This document shows positions 43,410 to 63,931 of a DNA stretch of 64,000 bases, one piece after another. Position numbers and translations under genes: made by a program. Source of the DNA: Auanema rhodensis (taxonomy: Eukaryota > Animalia > Nematoda). Where the stretch lies: positions 6,262,001 to 6,326,000 of the forward strand of contig OZ059895.1 of the NCBI GenBank assembly GCA_964057225.1, written 5' to 3'. The notes under the pieces were generated by a model. It was given only the letters and a program-made list of their open reading frames with translations. It searched no databases and was not told where the DNA came from. Position 1 is the stretch's first letter. Every line of letters starts with the position of its first letter.

Positions 43410-45056
43410 TCCAATCATTATATTAATTATTTTTACAAAATTTCTAAATATTAAATGAGTTAAAGATTTATGTTACATATATATAACCTTGAAGCTATTC
43501 TTCATCGACTTTAGTAAGAAAACACTTATAATATGTATAATGAATAGAATAATAAGTGAAGTATGTGTGTGCAGTAGTCGTTACACATCTACAGAAGTGT
43601 CAGTTATGATGATATTCAGAGAGTTGGCTAACGTTTGTCGGATTCTTGAAACAGAAACCTTTGAACATCTATGCCATCATATTCATGGTCATTTATAAGT
43701 ATATTATAACTGACAATAGAATGTCCAACAAGTAAAATATATAATATGTGAAAATGAGAAGATTATTTATATTAACTTTATACTAAATTGAAATATTTTA
43801 TTAAAAATCTAATTCTTTTATTATTTTAAAAATAAATTTTAAAATAATTTCAGAATAGTGCAACTCAGAGAGGTATAGAACAGTCAATAACAGTTATTAT
43901 ATCCTTTCACGATACATTCATTACAAAAGTTGATAAAGCTTTTCGATGTACTTGCTTTTACATGGAAATGGATACAATTGTAACACAAAGCTTAACTGTT
44001 AGGTATTAACTATATTATCTTTATCATTTAATAAAAAATTATTTAAGTCAACTTCCAACAACTGATTTACAAGATCAAGCACGTTTACCAACATGTACAT
44101 ATGCAGTTCGAAAAGATTCAATTGATGGTCCTGTTGTTCAATTTGCTCGTGTAGGAGATACTGTCTTTCATGTATGGGAATGTGATAATGGTTTATTTAT
44201 ATATTTAACTATATATATAGTTATAATATATAAATTATAGATATGTATTCAATGTATGTTCATAGTTGTTTCGTTGATGATGGAGCTGGTAATGATCGAA
44301 AAGCATTACTTGATGAAAATGGATGTGCTATTGATACACTGATTGTTCCTGATCTTCAATATAGTTCAGGATCTGGAAATTTAGCATATGCTGAAGTGAA
44401 TGTCTTCAAATTTGCTGATAAAGTAAATATATAGTATAATATTATAATATTATCAATAATAATATAGGTTACAACATACTTTCAATGTGCTATAACAACA
44501 TGTTTAGTAGCTGAACATGGCTGTGAAAATGTTATGGTAAGTTTATATATATATAGTTAATATACATATAATATACATTATTTTATATATTTTTGTATAT
44601 TTTAGCCTCCAAAATGTGGTCCACTTCAACGTAAATCACAAAGAAATAAAAGAAATATTAGATCTCATCATCGATATGTAAGTCTATTTTTCATATAATT
44701 TATATATATATAATCTTTTATTATAGAATAATAATAATAATACAATTGACGTTGCTTCACATGGAATTATGGTATTGGATCCATTAGATGAATTTGATTC
44801 ATCTGATTTCAAAACTTCTAATTCTCCAGAAGCTTTTTCTGAATCATCATGGAACTTATCTGCTAATAAAGCAACATCAAATGAGCCTATATGCGTTGGC
44901 TTTCAGAAGATGATGTTTTTCCTTTTACTGGTTTTAACCTTAATCACTTTTCTTCTTGTATTTATTTCTTGGTATATTTTAAGTACAAGAAAACGTGTTT
45001 CTTTCACTTCATCAATATCATCAAATAGTCTTGGCACAAAGAAATCTGTTTTTTAA
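42889..45056 (+). CDS. ZP-domain cuticlin (CUT-1/CUTL family), type I membrane protein
   Basis: A signal peptide is followed by PSVECMDD...FHGRIFVKG, CNMRRQR, VIISFHDTFITKVDKAFRCTCFY, PTCTY, VGDTVFHVWEC, VHSCFVDDG, LLDENGCAID and FKFADK...YFQC, then a furin site (RNKR) and a C-terminal TM helix. Confidence 0.93.
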
Positions 45057-49759: not shown

Positions 49760-52717
49760 TCATGTGCTATTGCTATTCATCATCTCAGGGTTGACCATTT
49801 TTTCTGATACTATACGTTTTCTTAGATTTTCTTCATATTGCTCACGACTATCAATTTCTTTAGCAACTTCTTTAATATCCTGAATTTTAAAATATATATT
49901 ATAGAATTAATATATAAATTTATATAAAATAACCTTTATACGATCATCAGCATCATATTCAAATTCAGATGGTCGTACACGTATACCTCCACATGTGACA
50001 CAGTAACATAACAATAGAATAAGTAATCCAGTTACCTGAAGAAAATATAAATATAATAATTAACTATATATATGTATAGTTAATATACTTCAACGATTGA
50101 AATAACAGATAATCCTAACCATAATCCAGCTTGACCACCAAGATCATTAATGATATCACTAATCTTAATTATATTATTTATGAAAATGGGGAAAGCTTTT
50201 GAATTTTCCCCATTTTTTCAACCGTCGAGAGACAGTTGCTTTGTGAACCTTCAATTGGTTCCCGATTTGGAGTTGAGTTGCTCCAGGAGTGGAATCGAGA
50301 ACCTTTTGGAGGTCACAGTTGCTGAATTTTTCAGCAGCTCCGGGTCTAGGACGATCTTGGAGATCGAACTCGCCGGATTTAAAGCGGCTAAACCACTTCT
50401 TACAAGTTGAATACGATGGAGAAGAATCTCCGTAAACAACTTTCATTTTTCTGAAGGTTTCTTTGGCAGAAATACCTTCATTAAAATGATGAAGAAGGGC
50501 GCTACGCATAAGGGTTACATCCATAACGAAATCAAAATAAAAAAACGTTCAAAGAAAAAAGAGAATTTTTCAAATGTAATGTTTTTTATCTTTATTATAT
50601 TTAAAAAATATTCTAATTTTTGAATTTTAAATTTATTTTTATGCTAATTTTGTAAATTTGATTTTCTCAAAGGGGGGCCGGGAATCAATGCAACCACCTA
50701 ATATTAATAATAATTCATAAGAAAACATACTCCATAACTTGGTGTTTCAGTATATTTTTCATATTTTAAAGTTTCAAAGAATACTTGTAGAAGTAATGCA
50801 TTATTACTGTACCAACTACGACATTCATCTGATTTCTAGATTTTTTTATAAAAAAAAGTTTAAAAATTAAAGTTTTATACTTACTGTTCTCCATGGAGAT
50901 GCCATATTATCACAACTTGGAGCCTAAATATAAATACATAAAACTATGATAAGTTTATGGATTCGAAATGTACAATCTTGACGATCAAGTTTTTTTCTGA
51001 GACACTACGAACTCAAGTTTTGTATTTTGAAACATAAAAATCGTGAATTTCAATAATTTTAACACAAAAATAATATTTTTAATTGAATAACATAATTTTG
51101 AATAAATTATATAATAAAATACTTACAGTATAATTAGAATCAGTTGCAACATTATATTTACTTGCTGGAAATTTAGCCAATGATGTTGTTGTAAAATAAT
51201 TAATTTCATGACAAGGTGGTTCACATCCACAATCCTATATTATAATAAATTATTTTAATAAAAAAAAAATAAAAAAACAATACCCTTAAAGGATTTAAAT
51301 TTTTTTCATTTACATTAGATTGATCACCTTTTAATGTTTGTAAACAATGTACTAAATATAAATAAATAAATAATATAAAAATAAAAATAAATTTACAATT
51401 AGCTGTATCACATAGGGTAGTTGATGGAGTATCATAACGTGGATTAGAACATTGACATCTTTCTTCTGTATAACGTTGACGACATCCCGTAAAGCATGTT
51501 TCAAGTGTATATGTATAATCTTTGAATAAATCCGATGTTTCTGATTCTCGATCAACACATCTTCCATATGGTCGTTTATGCCGTTGTGTCTTTGCCTTGA
51601 ATAATTTATGATAAACTATTCATAATATAGTTATTGATTACCATAGTTACAGATACAGCTGTTTGATAACCTACTCCAATGTTCATTCCATGACTTTCTA
51701 AAGCTGGATGACTTCCACGAGCATGAACACTAATACGAGCTCCAGCTAATTGTGTTGTTGATAAGAAATCAGTTTTAACATTTGTTTTTGGATATTGCTA
51801 TAAATATTTTTTTAAAATTATAAACTAATTATATATATATATTTACACTTATAGTTAATAATAATTTTAATCCAAATTTCATTCCTGCTCGTTGTACAGA
51901 AAAATTTTGATTGGATTGAGCATTAAAGGAGTAACATGCTCCATAAACAGGATCAATGATTTGTGTAAAATCATTTCTAAATATAATTTGTTAATTATAT
52001 GTATAAGATTGAGAAAAAATACCTTGTACACTTAGTACCTGCAAATGAACATTCAGATATTAAATCATTATAACTATATAATAATTGATTTTTATCATTT
52101 TGTGGTAATTTAGCTGCTAATATAGCTAAAGCATCTCGAGCAAGTGAATCTCGTTTATATGGATCACTTTGAACTGCCTGACTACTTGTTAATATAATTT
52201 ATAATTATATTATATATATACTAACCGTTAAATTATAAATATCAGGATTTGAAGATCTTAATTCATTTTTCACAGCTTTCTCATATATTTCCATTAATTT
52301 TGATATTCCTTCATATCGTCTTTTATCATTATCAATTACTGAATATTTATATGGATTATAATTACATACAGTAACAACTGGGAATAACTATAAACTTAAT
52401 TATATTTTTAATTAATTTTATAAATAAAATCAACCTGTTCTTCAAAAAATATATCTGTTGTTACTTTAACTGGAAATTTAAAAAATTTGATGATCATAGT
52501 AAAGAGTTGATAACCAAAAACACCAATCAAACATATAAACACTAAAGCCCAAAAAGCACGTGATAGCTAAGATTTATATATATATAATATTAATAATATA
52601 TAATATAGAAAAATATTTGTATATACATACCTTTGTTTGGGCGTTAGCTATATGTGGTACACCACAAACCGTTGACCAATTGGCAAAATCACAAAAGAGT
52701 TGAGCAAGACTCCGCAT
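49760..52717 (-). CDS. DEG/ENaC (amiloride-sensitive sodium channel family) subunit
   Basis: Contains FANWSTVCGVPHI, TM1 RAFWALVF, FPVVTVCNYNPYK, DPVYGACYSFN, AGMKFGLKL, PYGRC, a Cys-rich thumb, CEPPC and the pore motif DLGGQAGLWLGLSVISIVE. Confidence 0.93.
50174..50703 (-). mobile_element. 3'-truncated mariner (Tc1/mariner) element in an intron of the DEG/ENaC gene
   Basis: A TA dinucleotide (50702-50703) is followed by a left TIR, TTAGGTGGTTGCATTGATTCCCGGCC, and a 116-aa ORF (50524-50174) with the mariner HTH motif WFSRFKSGEFDLQDRPRPG plus a second HTH. There is no catalytic domain and no right TIR. The host intron spans 50164-50730. Confidence 0.9.
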
Positions 52718-56268: not shown

Positions 56269-56709
56269 GACGTTTGGAATATGAAACTAAAAGTAAAAGG
56301 AAGGATTTCTGCTACAAGAGAGTGAGAGTGAAGGGGGTGGACGACAATGCCATATCTATGGGATCAGACGCTGTTAATTGTGATTGGCTTCTGTGTTGTG
56401 TAGGAATATTCTAGTAAGCTCTATTTCAATCACATTGTCTATCTGGAAAAGACTATTAAGATTATAAATCTTATATAAAATTTCGAATTAAACAGTTTAT
56501 TTGTATTGATTATGCTATATATATATATACATATATATCCTGATCTACATACATACATACATACATAAGTATGCGATATAAAATTTATTTATTTTTATAA
56601 TTAATAATTATTTTTATTTAATTATTTAAAAATTAAAATTAAATATATATATTTTAGATTATAAATTTATAAAGAAACAACGTTTAAATATTCTTCGAAC
56701 AATAGAATA

Positions 56710-57783
56710 ATGTCTTCTTTAACCTCATGTCCATATTGTGAGCGCTTATATACAAGCCATTCATTGGGTATTCATCTTCCAAAGTGTCGAAGCAATCCTT
56801 CAGGTAACATGTACTACTTATATATATATATATTTATATACATTATATATCTTAAATATACATATAATAAAGAATATTATATATTTAAATATGTAAAATA
56901 TTGATTTCAGTTCAATATATGGCTCGTAGCTCATCAGTAAAAACTTCAAAAAAGAAATGTGTCAAAGACAGACCACGAACACGTTCGATATGTCGTCATG
57001 AAAAAGGTATTAAATCTTTTTTTTTTTCAAATATAATTGTTATTATTATAAAATAAAAAATGAAATATTTATTAAATTCTAGTTGATTTTCGAATTTGTC
57101 TGATATGTGGAAATCAAATTGATGTGAACGTTATTGATGCTCATGAAATTAATTGTATAGAAAGTAAGTAATAAACTTTTATATTTTGTAAAATTATATA
57201 ATTTTTAATCTTTCACTTATGATCAAAGATAAAATAATTTTAATATTTTCTATTTATAATATAAAAAGTTTATTTTTACTTTTTTTTTGACGAAGAAAAC
57301 GGTTGTGTTTTGATGTTATAACTCAAAATTTAAATTGCAGTAATTTAATTTAAATAAATTTTATTTTAAGAAATTAGTTATGTAGTATCATAATTACCAT
57401 ATATTACTCTATATATATATTCATTTTCATTTATTATTTTAACTGAAAATCATTAAAAGTTTGATCAAATTGTATGATAGACGTTTATTATTTGCAGAAT
57501 GGGATAGTTTTACGAAACGAATAGCTTCTCGATTTGAAGTTCGAAGACCAATTCCTTTGCTTATTCCATCTATAGATGGTTCTTCCGATATGCAAAGATT
57601 AAATAAACATGCTATGGAACAGAGTCGAAAAGCTCAGGTTTATTCTATAATTTGGATTTTCAAGTTTAAAAATTAAGTTTTTAGGTAGCACGTTGTAGGC
57701 GTTGTCAAATTACAATACCAATTATGTCAGCTATAGATCATAAGTGCACTCGTTTTGAACCAGCTGTGGAGTTCTTTTTCTAA
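56710..57783 (+). CDS. C2HC zinc-finger protein, ZNF474/ZNF475-like
   Basis: Contains CPYCERLYTSHSLGIHLPKC, then ICLICGNQ...AHEINCIEKW...RRP...NKHAMEQSRKAQVARCRRC...HKC, and ends VEFFF*. The CxxC...HExxCxxKW...RRP...N..A...AQL..C pattern matches my recollection of ZNF474. Confidence 0.75.
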
Positions 57784-58096
57784 ATGAGGTTTGAACGTAA
57801 CTTATGGTGTCTGCGATTATCATATTTGCTCAGCCAATGATATTAAGAATTTGAATTTGTTGTGACTTTTATAAAGTTCTGTTATATACAATTGATTATG
57901 ATCACATATATTATCTGATTTCTACATGTATATATGGAATAGTTGCTCAATTCTTCATAAGGCACACAACTCGATGATATTGAAAAAGAGAAATCTGCAA
58001 ATAAGAAGTAAGAAAAAGAATTAAAAGAAAAGTTTCTAATATAGCAAAAAGGGAGGAGGGGGGCTGGAGGGACAAAAAAAAAATTAGTGGCTTACG

Positions 58097-58273
58097 CTAA
58101 ACATAAAATTCTTTGCTCATCGTTATATCAGGTCTGTTTAGTGATGCTGAAGACAACTCATATGATGTTGATCTATAACGGAAATAGAAGCAGAGAGCTA
58201 CTAATAGAGCCATAAATCCTATACACAACATTGCTATCATCCATTGTAGCCAATCCAAAGCCAGGAAGAACAT
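58097..58273 (-). CDS. 58-aa single-pass membrane microprotein with a C-terminal PDZ-binding motif (KEFYV)
   Basis: MFFLALDWLQWMIAMLCIGFMALLVALCFYFRYRSTSYELSSASLNRPDITMSKEFYV*. It has a ~20-aa hydrophobic helix and an RYR stop-transfer. A GTAAG donor sits 1 nt after the stop, with a pyrimidine-rich TTTGCAG acceptor at 57995. It falls below the ORF-track cutoff. Confidence 0.7.
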   Translation of the reverse strand: MFFLALDWLQWMIAMLCIGFMALLVALCFYFRYRSTSYELSSASLNRPDITMSKEFYV

Positions 58274-60743
58274 GAAGTTGTTTACCTAGATGAAGGTTTT
58301 TTCTTCTTTTTTTTTTGGAACAAAGCAAGTAGGCGAGAATGTTAAAACAGACATCAACGAAAACTATCTTCAAGATATGACAAAAGAAGAAATTTAGTTT
58401 TTTTTTGGAAAAAAAAGTTTTCAATTCTAAAAAAAAAATATATTTTTGTGAAACATTGAGGTTCATGCGTTGAAAGGAAAAAATAAATTTTTTTTCTGTT
58501 TCATGTGAATTGAGAAAAACACCTGTTACATCCTCATAAAGCTCAAAAATAAGAATTAAATAAAGAAGAAGTAGAAGAGTATTGAGTAAAGTACGAATTT
58601 AGCTCATTAGAAATAGATGTACTAAACTGAAAAGTGATGTTTCTCCATATAGGCATTTTACGAAATGCTAGCTTTCTAGACGTGAACAGACTTAAAAAAC
58701 ACTCATCATTTTTTAGAGTCAAAATGTAAAAATCGGTTGCATTCAAACAAACAAACAACAACAACAACATGAGTAAACATGAGTAATATTTTGAATTTGA
58801 ATATGAATGTGTAGTTGATATCAAAATTTATAATGGCACAATATAGAAAGGAAACTCAGTATTAAAAAGTAAAAAAATACATGAAGAGATGGAAAAAAAA
58901 AAGAAAAATTGTCATGAAGTTGACACTAATGAAGAATTCAGCAAGCTGTGAACACAAGTGTATGTTTACTATATATGGATACATGTGGCGACTTTAAGAA
59001 GGAAGACACAAGAGAAAGAGGACTACTAGAGAATTCTTCACAGAGTGGAGGGACTGATTTCAGTTTCAACGAAGTCTAGCTTTATCCCATTGAAAAGAAC
59101 AGGGCTTGATGACAAGGCCGGAAAAAGAGAGATGGATCGCTGGTGAGACATATGCTGGAAGAAATGAAAAATTTGAAATTAGGAGCCAAGTTTTAAAAGG
59201 GTTAGAAGAGCCATGGGATTCAATGTGGCCTTTCAACGAACTATTATTTGGGTGAAGAAAAAAACAGATAAATTAGGGAAAAACGAAAGCGGCTCATGCC
59301 TCTGAATGTCACTCTCATCGTGTATGTGTGCGAATGTATTTGTGGGATGAACGAAAAGCTGACTCAAAGCTAGAAGCAGACATCAGGATGACACTAGAAT
59401 GCAAAAAGACGACGAGACGAGGTCGCAGCTAATCAGCTCTGGATGAGCACACTGAATCGAGACAGCCCAATTGAGATGGAATATGAGTCTTAATAAGGAG
59501 TGAGAAGGCTAAAACCAGATATGGAAGCATGATCTCAGAGGATCTGTTTCTGATAGACAATCTCAACAAAGAACGATGGAAATCTTTATTAACCTTGCAA
59601 ATATTATAATATTAATTGAATAAGAATATCAAGATGATATTGCCGGATATTATTGCTTCATTCATCTTGTGACTGGAAATAGACAAATCGAAAAACCAAC
59701 AAAACCTGCAAAATATATAATATATTCTACGAATAGGTTTCAGTTGTTTAAGTATTTGAAATCCCACTTCGGGTTTTGAAGATTATTCAAGCAAAACTCG
59801 GGAGAGATGTTAAAGTAGATTTGCTTCGAAAGTTTTTATACCATCATAAAGATAAATGTAAAAGCAAAAACGCTTTTTTTTATTTGTTCTCGTCGGATAC
59901 AACAAAAACTTTTCAAATATATAACTGAAAATAAGAAATGTGGAATAGCCTTTGAACATCTGAATTCGTTAGGGTAAAAGACGAACACAGCCTTTCTTGG
60001 AAAATATCCGGATTTCCTTCAAACTCATCTTCATGCATACGTAATATAATAGAAAACTAGTAACCTTTTCAAATACGTTTGTTTAAGATAGAATGTCTAA
60101 AAAGCCTTGAAATAAATCAACTGAAGTTGATGAGAGAAATGTCCATCTATTGCTCTTTTTTTCAGAACCATGGTTATGATCCAATTATATGCAACCTTTT
60201 ACTGCTTTGAAACATTTGCTCGTATATATTATATGTTACTTTGCCAAATTCAAGTACAGCTTGGTTACAGCAATCTGCAAGTTAGCGAAAAAAATTAAAA
60301 CCTTGAATGCTACTGTTCTGTATATTTTCATAGGAGCATAATCCCTATGGATTATTAAATAAAGAAACTCGCATTGGAGTCTAAATACATAGATTCTCCC
60401 AAATGTAATGCAAAATGAGCAAATGGTGTTTAAACGAATCAAAAAAACAAAGAATAAGAGGTAAATATTCATCTAAAGAACGCTATGACGTCACTTCAGG
60501 CATATGTAATTATAATAAATAATATTTAGAAATATACAATGTACTCGCGTTAAGTTCCCGATTAAACAATAATGAGCACACGATGATTTGTTGATAACAG
60601 ATTGATGACGAACATAACATACCCAGTTACTCTCGGAGAAAAACTAAAGAAATGCATAGAATACTATGCACATATCTAATAGAAAGAGGAGAATATTAAT
60701 GTCACTTGCTATTTGCTTAAAAACGTTAAAAATCTAATTAAAT

Positions 60744-63700
60744 CTAGTTGTAGAACTTCTTTCCATTCTTGGCGTAATCTCTCAATAATTGGCATGGCTC
60801 AAACTGAAAAGAGGATTCTTACTTTTCCCAACATTTCATGGTTTGTTGTTCATGTCGAAATCAAAACATACTTGTTCACGAGCGTAGGCAGAAGCGAACT
60901 TGTCCATGGAGTTGACAAGCTTCTCAGCACCATAGAGATCTAAGAAGCGGAATGGTCCTCCCCAGAAAGGTGGGAATCCAATACCGAAGACGGATGCAAT
61001 ATCTCCATCAGACTATAAATTAATTGATATTCATGGTATACTGAAATTCATCGAATAACGTACAGGAGATGCAATAACTTCTTCTTGAAGACAGAGCACA
61101 GCTTCGTTAATGAAACGAGATGCAAGTCTAAGTTGACGATCTTCTGTTGTGTTGCTATAAAAATATCATCATGAATAACTCAGAAAATGCTAGTTACCAG
61201 TTGGCTGGAGCAGTCAAACGGTACTTCTGGAGCAGCTTGGATGCTTCCTCGTTAACGCGCTTGCTTCCCTTCTTACCATCTCCGTAAAGATAGATACCTA
61301 GATATCAGAAATTAAAACAGGTAAATATTTAAATAAAAAACAAACCCTTTCCATTCTTCTTTCCGTAGAATCCAGCGTTAACCATAGAGGTGAGAAGTTC
61401 AGCATTACCACCCTGGACACGTGGGCCAAGAGCTTTGCCCAAAAACTCGGCAACATGAGCTCCAACATCAAGACCAACCTTAAAATAGAAAAAAGAAGTT
61501 AACTCTTTTAGTAATGATACACCTCATCAGCAAGAGTAGCAGCTCCAACTGGGAAACCGAATTGCTTAGTAAGTTTATCAAGATCATTTGGAGAAACTCC
61601 TTCTTGAAGGAGTCTGACTACTTCTGACATCATGGGTCCAAGGCAGCGAACAACAAAGAATCCTGGGCAATCCTTGAAGAATTCGATTGTAACATATCAT
61701 TAAATAGGTTTCTTTCATACCTTAACAACAACAACCAATTTTCCTTGCTTAAGGCCAGCACGAGCAGCAGTTGCAAGAGTTTCTTTGGAAGTTCCGTCAT
61801 GAACAATAATTTCCAAAAGTTGCATTTTGTCAACAGGTGAGAAGTAGTGCATTCCAATAATCTGGATCAAAGTATTGTTGGAAATATGAGAGATATATTA
61901 GTTTTAACCTTATCTGGCCTAGCAGAAGCTTTGGCGATTTCCTTGATTGGAAGAGCAGAGGTATTAGAAGCAATAACGGTATTCTAAGAAACAAATTTAC
62001 ATTCAAACAGATTTGTTGAAAAAAGAAACATACGGGTCCAACAATGCTTTCGATTTGCTTGATAACTTTATGTTTCAAGTTGATATCTTCGAAAACTGCT
62101 TCAATAACAAGATCGGAATTCTTAATAGCATTGTAATCAGTTGCAGCAGTCATGTTGGAAATAATGCGTTCCTTTTCAAGCTTATTAATCTTCTTTTTCT
62201 TCTGTTGAGTGTTCAATTGAGTGATTATTTGGTTTTGGCCACGCTCCAAACCCTGAAGCATTATAACTTAAATAATTAATCGAGAACTTGGTAAATTACA
62301 GATTCGTTCATATCGATCATGACGGCTTTTACTCCCTTGTCAATAGTGACATTAACAATACCGGCACCCATCAAACCTGCTCCAATTACGGCAACCTCGC
62401 TAAAAAAAAATTGTTATACTTAGGAGAAGAAAAACATACTTGACAGGGATTCCTTCTCCGTATTTGCTTTTCTTAGCTTCAGTGGATCCATTGAATAATC
62501 CGATCAGAGCAGCAGATTGGTAACTTTGAGTAAGCTCTCCAAAAGCCTGTAACCAAAACTTTACAAAACAAGCATTAATCACGACATTACCTTAGCTTCA
62601 TGAGCATATCCGGCTTCACCTCCCTTGATAACTCCAGTGCGAATAACATCAAGAATCTTTAGAGGAGCAGGGTAGTTACCAGCAGTCATTTTCACGATCT
62701 GAAGAAGATATTTTTCCATTATTTGAAATGAATAAAACCTTTTCTCTGGCCATCTTCAAAACCACATTGTCCAAAACTAAAGAAGATTTTATAATCTGAA
62801 AGTACAAATTTACTTTTCCACAAAGAAATTACTCATATACCGATTGGGTGAGATTATAAATCTTCCCCTTATCGCGGTTGATCTTTAGAGAACCCTCAGA
62901 TAATTGACGAGCAGTTTTGATAGCTACTTCTTCCAAATATCTAAATGTCTAGTTGACAACATAATTTTTCAAATTGAAAAACCTGTGAGTATTCTTTACA
63001 CCAGGTTCAACACCATCTCCAAGAGGTTGGATGACCTGATCCACTAAGCCAATCTTCTTAGCCTTGTCAGCCTTAACACGCTTTCCGGTAAGAATCATAT
63101 CAAGGGCGTTTTGGAGAGACACAAGTTTAGGCAAGCGTTGGGTTCCACCTGCACCAGGAAGAAGACCAAGCATGACCTGAAAAGAATTCGATTAATTTCA
63201 TCTAAAGATTCAAGCTCTCACCTCTGGTAGAGCCAACTGTGTCTTCTTGTCGTTAACAGCAATTCTATAGTGGCAAGCAAGAGCCAACTCAAGACCTCCA
63301 CCCATACAACTACCCATGATAGCGGCAACAATTGGCTTAGTAGATTTTTCAAGCTTGAAGAACTGCTCCTGGCCACCCCTCAAACAATTTTATATAGAAA
63401 TACGTGTTCCAGTTTAAAATACTTTGCAATAGCTTCACCATCGGCAGCGGTCTTAGCATTCTTTAACATGTTGATATCGGCACCAGCAACGAAACTATTG
63501 GGTTTTCCAGACATGAGTACGATTGACTTAACTGAATCATCCTTTTGAGCCTAAACAAAAAAGTAGTTAAGCATTGGAAAATTTACTAACCGATTCCATG
63601 GCACTCTTGATATCATTGCTAACAGCCTCATTCAAGGTGTTCTCCTTCATATTTGGAGCATCGATCTTGATGATAGCAACATCTCCATTTCTTTCAACTC

Positions 63701-63931
63701 TGACTGTTCCTTAAGGTTATATCATTTTGAGGAAAAGAATCTCATAACGAACCTTGATTCACCGTCTGGGTGGTGCTGAGTAAACGAGCAGAGGGAGCTA
63801 AAAATGTTGAGATATTTAGAAATAATAATAAAGATATTATAATGGAAATTAGAATTAGTTATATTCTTCGAAGATTTTAAACTTTAAAACATACCAAAGA
63901 GCTTCTTTCCATATGCCAATCGAGACAGCAT
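60744..63931 (-). CDS. HADHA: Mitochondrial trifunctional enzyme alpha subunit (enoyl-CoA hydratase/3-hydroxyacyl-CoA dehydrogenase; ech-1 family)
   Basis: The presequence [12 protein letters not shown] is followed by [95 protein letters not shown] and [16 protein letters not shown], and ends KKFYN*. Confidence 0.96.

Follow-up and report, generated by a model that had tools for sequence, protein, structure and literature searches.

Can a nematode make a membrane protein that consists of little more than the transmembrane helix and cytosolic tail of an adhesion receptor? The question is raised by a small open reading frame (ORF) on the minus strand of a 64,000-nucleotide (nt) stretch of the Auanema rhodensis genome (assembly GCA_964057225.1, contig OZ059895.1, positions 6,262,001 to 6,326,000), hereafter the window, in whose own numbering all positions are given. 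An earlier note, made from the sequence alone, had described here a hidden microprotein of 58 amino acids (aa) with a syndecan/neurexin-like tail and no ectodomain. Our analysis establishes that a spliced minus-strand transcript exists at this locus and that its first AUG opens the 58-aa ORF. We consider it likely that this is a real gene, its RNA most likely encoding the 58-aa membrane protein. The further step, in which this gene model is combined with a role at PDZ-domain scaffolds predicted from short tail motifs, is put forward tentatively, as a reading not far short of probable.

The transcript and its reading frame

The RNA evidence consists of spliced contigs from four runs of one study (X1-X4), compared with the genome over 56600-62400. 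These contigs behave as spliced RNA: every intron of a neighbouring minus-strand gene for a HADHA-like protein is missing from them and is bounded by GT..AG on that strand, and intergenic DNA has zero depth. At the microprotein locus they define the following elements, listed in the direction of transcription together with one exon that had been proposed further upstream.

59594-59672, minus strand: upstream exon proposed in the earlier note, unsupported (zero depth; its ATG frame ends after 17 codons)
58286-58287, minus strand: splice acceptor AG (catctAG, followed by GTAAAC); contigs end 0-5 letters beyond it and the exon begins at 58285
58096-58285, minus strand: exon 1, 190 nt, made up of 12 nt of leader, the entire ORF and a single nt past the stop (RNA contigs X1-X4)
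58097-58273, minus strand: coding sequence, 58 aa plus TAG stop, from the first ATG in the exon (translation)
57995-58095, minus strand: intron, 101 nt, GTAAG...TTTGCAG, beginning 1 nt after the stop (joint in X1, X2 and X4; splice sites)
57866-57994, minus strand: exon 2, 3' untranslated as read (contig pieces 57866-57994 in X1 and 57891-57994 in X4)

A contig covers 58096-58287 in all four runs with no letter differing from the genome. In three of the four, the contigs carry the joint 58096/57994. The 101 nt that it skips are bounded by GT..AG on the minus strand, which bears out an intron that had been predicted from the splice sites at 58095 and 57995. The minus-strand ATG at 58273 opens a frame of 58 codons that closes with TAG at 58099-58097; it is the first ATG in exon 1, 12 nt from the exon start, and its ORF fills the exon. 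How often would such a frame arise by chance? Of 9,670 segments of 190 nt drawn at random from presumed non-coding stretches on both strands of the window, only 0.11% contain a complete ATG-to-stop ORF of at least 58 codons; the local stop density is 7.1%. Because the exon limits derived from RNA and the ORF derived from sequence coincide (p about 0.001), coding is likely. A search of Rfam over 57400-60500 gave no match, and a repeat check of this region returned nothing meaningful.

The 5' end of the transcript had been predicted to lie further upstream, with the exon at 59672-59594 spliced to the ORF exon across a junction 59593/58286. Contig depth is zero throughout 58346-59897 in all four runs, so that part of the prediction falls away together with its junction, whereas the acceptor at 58287-58286 and the exon start at 58285 stand. 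Other acceptors confirmed in this genome include CTAG, TTAAG and ATCCAG, and the sequence catctag falls within their range. In all four runs the genome match of the contigs ends at 58287, with 5, 5, 1 and 0 extra letters as judged from record versus aligned lengths. A cis-spliced upstream exon is normally carried for at least k-1 letters (30 or more), as at every junction of the HADHA-like gene. Nematode spliced leaders are about 22 nt long, and contigs that break off no more than about 25 nt past the acceptor are what one would expect from them. Given that the contigs end 0-5 letters past the acceptor in every run, a spliced leader is favoured, and the 5' end of the microprotein transcript is probably a trans-spliced leader, which fits better than a larger upstream gene.

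The predicted protein and its tail

The features of the predicted product, all read from the translation, were found where the earlier note had placed them: a 58-aa frame, a transmembrane segment, the juxtamembrane sequence RYRSTSYEL and the terminal EFYV.

58181-58243, minus strand: predicted transmembrane helix core, residues 11-31 (WMIAML...CFYF), with residues 1-10 hydrophobic too (hydropathy, AlphaFold2, translation)
58154-58180, minus strand: juxtamembrane RYRSTSYEL (basic/aromatic, then S/T-Y-x-L; translation)
58100-58111, minus strand: C-terminal EFYV, class II PDZ-ligand pattern (translation)

Residues 1-31 are hydrophobic with the exceptions of D7 and Q10, and the 19-residue Kyte-Doolittle mean peaks at 2.6 over residues 11-31. 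AlphaFold2, run without an alignment, predicts a single helix over residues 2-46, with pLDDT values of 88-96 over the first 30 residues, a tail of low confidence and a non-helical stretch over the final 12 residues. The remaining 27-aa tail starts with RYRSTSYEL and finishes with SKEFYV. According to the positive-inside rule, positive charges flank the cytosolic end of a membrane helix; because both arginines sit C-terminal of the helix, the tail is predicted to lie in the cytosol and the N-terminus outside. With only about 10 hydrophobic residues before the helix, the protein would be left with practically no ectodomain. This agrees with what had been claimed for it, since ten residues precede the helix and no RNA-covered exon lies upstream.

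What might such a tail do? Its free C-terminus fits the class II PDZ-ligand pattern, with F at position -2 and V at position 0, preceded at -3 by E, a residue common there in such ligands. EFYV shares positions -3 to -1 with the syndecan ending EFYA, and positions -3, -1 and 0 with the neurexin ending EYYV. The PDZ domain of CASK has been reported to bind syndecan EFYA and is predicted to bind neurexin EYYV, with a preference for hydrophobic or aromatic residues at -2. In Caenorhabditis elegans, loss of EFYA from the syndecan SDN-1 abolishes LIN-2-dependent receptor clustering, and the C1 sequence KKDEGS of the same protein mediates binding of the FERM protein FRM-3. The endings reported for bilaterian syndecans are EFYA, EYYA and EIYA, all finishing in A, and KKDEGS is nearly invariant in animals. 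Glycophorin C, neurexin IV and paranodin carry a juxtamembrane GNP motif that binds the FERM domains of protein 4.1. RYRSTSYEL reproduces the outline alone of the syndecan C1 and GNP regions (a basic/aromatic start, then S-Y), the comparison with GNP being made without a consensus. The syndecan/neurexin-like description of the tail therefore stands as regards its class II ending; a family link to syndecan or neurexin does not, as there is no Pfam Syndecan domain, no KKDEGS and no HMMER match. A literature search on EFYV turned up no known PDZ ligand with this ending.

Within the window the pattern is uncommon. The ending E[FYW][YFW][AVIL]-stop occurs in 2 of 6,145 stop-terminated tetrapeptides, and among the 153 ATG ORFs of at least 40 aa the 58-aa ORF is the only one that pairs it with a membrane-like segment, a feature present in 22 of those ORFs in this AT-rich window.

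In conjunction with the transcript evidence, which shows a mature RNA that begins at the 58285 acceptor and loses the 101-nt intron from its 3' untranslated region, we propose the following model. The locus would be a real two-exon minus-strand gene. The 58-aa product would insert with its N-terminus out and its C-terminus in the cytosol, exposing a flexible 27-aa tail. The free EFYV is predicted, based on its motif, to dock onto class II PDZ domains such as those of LIN-2/CASK, syntenin or MPP type, and RYRSTSYEL may provide a second, weak contact that is of FERM type or regulated by phosphorylation. The protein could thereby act as a minimal membrane anchor for such scaffolds, or as a competitor for them. 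The earlier note's idea of a mimic of adhesion receptors, able to recruit PDZ scaffolds or to compete for them, is in our hands likewise a hypothesis drawn from short motifs. One may go further and speculate about a nematode-specific, tail-only microprotein that titrates or relocates LIN-2/CASK-type and FERM scaffolds in competition with the tails of adhesion receptors, presenting both the EFYV end and a FERM-like juxtamembrane patch, and that might be switched off when read-through into exon 2 masks its motif; we consider this extended version unlikely. If the protein is made and binds PDZ domains, it would represent a minimal natural tool for asking how syndecan/neurexin-type tails organise LIN-2/CASK complexes, and a functional microprotein of a kind that may escape standard gene finders. 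Otherwise it would be a further case of an orphan small ORF that is expressed. In both cases, the RNA provides a gene model with two exons for this nematode locus.

Relatives, analogues and competing explanations

Is the protein found elsewhere? A word-index search for relatives of 32-101 aa found none, and an exhaustive phmmer search of 1.84 billion representatives gave zero matches at E up to 0.001; an exact-sequence look-up was also empty. Pfam hmmscan at E up to 10 returned only weak, helix-driven matches (A43R, MLANA and TMIE), among them neither Syndecan nor SMAGP, and neither PDB sequences nor a metagenome scan held anything specific for the 58-aa protein. These blanks have to be read against the content of the collections. 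With a very conserved exon of the HADHA-like gene as query (60872-61012 or 60839-61012, minus strand), a search retrieved only fragments of 65-87% identity and no 100% self match, the best of them (85-87%) in metagenomes, Logan contigs and one fragmented NCBI assembly (GCA_024449465.1). Because even a conserved exon gave no self match, we conclude that these collections contain neither the genome of the window nor its near relatives, which makes the blank protein searches weak evidence.

Synteny was examined on nine contigs of related nematodes (L001-L009) reached through the HADHA-like exon 60872-61012. Neither tblastn with the 62-aa exon-1 translation nor a scan for ORFs ending in [ED]-aromatic-aromatic-aliphatic found a counterpart on them, and synteny is broken there. 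The relatives are distant (about 73% DNA identity in the HADHA-like exon), and most of their contigs end 0.85-1.75 kb after the stop codon of the HADHA-like gene. Their loci also lack the zinc-finger gene that neighbours the microprotein gene in the window; at one of them, the downstream position is taken by a gene for an L24e ribosomal protein. Given the distance of these relatives, the broken gene order and the short contigs, the blank is uninformative rather than negative.

Small tail-dominated membrane proteins are known in vertebrates, SMAGP and glycophorin C being examples, and the mimic idea is thus less unprecedented than the earlier note implied. The short tails of both proteins bind protein 4.1 and the MAGUKs p55/CASK. 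They resemble the 58-aa protein in being small and single-pass, with no cleaved signal peptide and a short cytoplasmic tail, but share no sequence match with it (Pfam SMAGP was not matched). Compared with C. elegans SDN-1, the protein has a single-pass helix followed by Y-R...S-Y-x-L and a tail ending in E-F-Y-x; unlike syndecan, it has no KKDEGS C1 sequence, signal peptide, ectodomain, Ser-Gly glycosaminoglycan sites or Pfam match, and it ends in V rather than A. Its EFYV resembles the neurexin end EYYV, whereas it lacks the LNS (laminin G)/EGF ectodomain of neurexins, has a far shorter tail and shows no detected homology to them. None of the tests run (Pfam, C1 motif, ectodomain and HMMER) places the protein in the syndecan, neurexin or SMAGP/glycophorin C families.

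A different kind of comparison is offered by the coronavirus E protein. It comprises about 75 aa, with a very short N-terminal part outside, a single helix and, at its C-terminus, a PDZ-binding motif through which it engages scaffolds of the host. It shares with the 58-aa protein a minimal outside part, one helix and a PDZ-type end, and is unrelated in sequence; it is viral, forms a pentameric channel and carries the motif DLLV. SMAGP and glycophorin C, for their part, are vertebrate proteins with glycosylated ectodomains of tens of residues. A comparison of language-model features listed TMEM52 (0.92), stannin (0.91), the glycophorin-C/SMAGP cluster (0.90) and coronavirus E (0.85) as look-alikes, all with low shared-feature counts and to be taken as leads only; the tail alone gave no usable match in the feature search. 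By architecture, SMAGP, glycophorin C and coronavirus E are the closest analogues.

How well does the proposed model hold? Several observations weigh against it. The codon-usage likelihood of the ORF is -0.38 bits per codon, compared with a mean of -0.29 for the non-coding null; this measure was trained mainly on the HADHA-like gene and has no discriminating power here, since the RNA-supported zinc-finger neighbour also scores only -0.27. The start context, cttcATG, lacks the A-rich consensus typical of nematodes, and the juxtamembrane stretch lacks the DEGS/KKDEGS core that binds FERM domains. The RNA contigs are unstranded and come from a single study, and the letters 5' of the acceptor are known by count alone. 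Because no homologue was found in any collection, selection on the ORF is unproven. Finally, the position of the intron right after the stop, with 37 further codons open, hints at a C-terminus that may have been truncated only recently. We nonetheless judge that the case exceeds chance, because the motif set coincides with an expressed, exon-filling ORF.

The same evidence can be arranged differently. The product may be a young, lineage-restricted small membrane protein whose tail resembles PDZ ligands by chance and whose function, if any, resides in the helix or elsewhere rather than in PDZ docking. We regard this as the lesser prospect, yet one that carries real weight: no relatives were found, membrane-like segments are common among the ORFs of the window, the codons for EFYV are AT-rich and the motif definitions were set after the fact. 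Extrapolated from window frequencies, a genome-wide scan would meet roughly ten ORFs joining a membrane segment to an E-aromatic-aromatic-aliphatic end by chance. What sets the 58-aa ORF apart from such coincidences is the order of its parts, with helix, basic juxtamembrane stretch and class II end following each other in a combination unique in the window, and its place in an expressed exon that it fills. The latter property, very unlikely by chance for the first AUG of an exon, likewise speaks against a non-coding or regulatory transcript, for instance one that converges on the zinc-finger gene and overlaps its 3' end; the ORF of such a transcript would not be productively translated. Codon usage no better than that of non-coding ORFs, the weak start context and the want of protein evidence would suit such a transcript, as would the meeting of the convergent 3' ends at 57861-57866; given that Rfam gave no match and that the codon test is powerless here, we hold it to be improbable.

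Two further explanations turn on the edges of exon 1. In a truncated or read-through gene the ORF would have continued, or would still continue, into exon 2 to give about 96 aa, and EFYV would be accidental or masked in the longer isoform. The spliced frame past TAG (C, the last base of exon 1, joined to AT TTC ... of exon 2) is indeed open for 37 more codons, with the intron only 1 nt from the stop. At the local stop density this has a chance of about 0.07, which is weak; the extension is of low complexity with no recognisable feature, and the TAG is present in all four RNA samples with no differing letters, leaving this explanation little chance of being right. The open post-stop frame itself, at 57884-57994 on the minus strand (HFSFSISSSCVPYEELSNYS...), may be what is left of an earlier coding exon, or an extension reached by read-through. 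At the other edge, exon 1 is open in the ORF frame from its first base (VNNFM...), so that a phase-0 junction would read through. Exon 1 would then close a longer gene, which might be a receptor of the syndecan type with its ectodomain exons upstream or the HADHA-like gene itself, for which exon 1 would serve as an alternative 3' exon. Several HADHA-like exons end in phase 0 with ...AG, and the letters past the acceptor are unread. We disfavour this and take it to be quite improbable: in each of the four runs the contigs break off 0-5 letters after the acceptor, the upstream interval has zero depth, no joint from a HADHA-like exon to 58285 was reported although the contigs of that gene are about 20 times deeper, and there is no Syndecan domain. 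A cleaved signal peptide that releases a secreted 27-aa tail peptide, suggested by a hydrophobic stretch beginning at residue 1, is highly improbable, as 31 hydrophobic residues are too long for a signal peptide, no small-x-small cleavage site precedes R32, no dibasic site is present and the positive charges follow the helix.

Neighbouring genes and minor observations

The microprotein gene lies about 2.2 kb downstream of the HADHA-like gene and is convergent with the small zinc-finger gene. The latter (56675-57861, plus strand) has five exons whose four GT..AG joints are all present in RNA contigs; the encoded protein, about 170 aa long, contains three zinc knuckles of the form C-x2-C...H-x3-C (MSSLTSCPYCERLY...). 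Its contigs and those of the microprotein gene end 4 nt apart, at 57861 and 57866, respectively. Beside both contig ends, at about 57867-57875, lies the palindromic TTTATAAA, a possible poly(A) signal in both directions.

The HADHA-like gene (60455-63710, minus strand) encodes a protein resembling the trifunctional enzyme alpha subunit, a 3-hydroxyacyl-CoA dehydrogenase (Pfam 3HCDH_N), and contains many introns of 43-68 nt, all confirmed by RNA. The protein ends in ...AKNGKKFYN. Contig depth over this gene is about 20 times that over the microprotein exon. Between the two genes, low-depth contigs (2-4x) from two runs cover 60027-60259, and a contig running from 60279 upward carries 56 preceding letters that occur nowhere else in the window; a search of the window with 30 loose letters at 60279 likewise found no second occurrence. 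Possible origins of the signal at 60027-60279 are a chimeric contig, HADHA-like read-through and an outron belonging to the microprotein gene.

Elsewhere in the window, a small ORF at 44769-45056 (plus strand, 95 aa) combines one hydrophobic helix with a basic, serine-rich tail (STRKRVSFTSS...). A fragment at 50174-50524 (minus strand) corresponds to the N-terminus of a mariner/Mos1-type transposase (Pfam HTH_48, E 5e-16).

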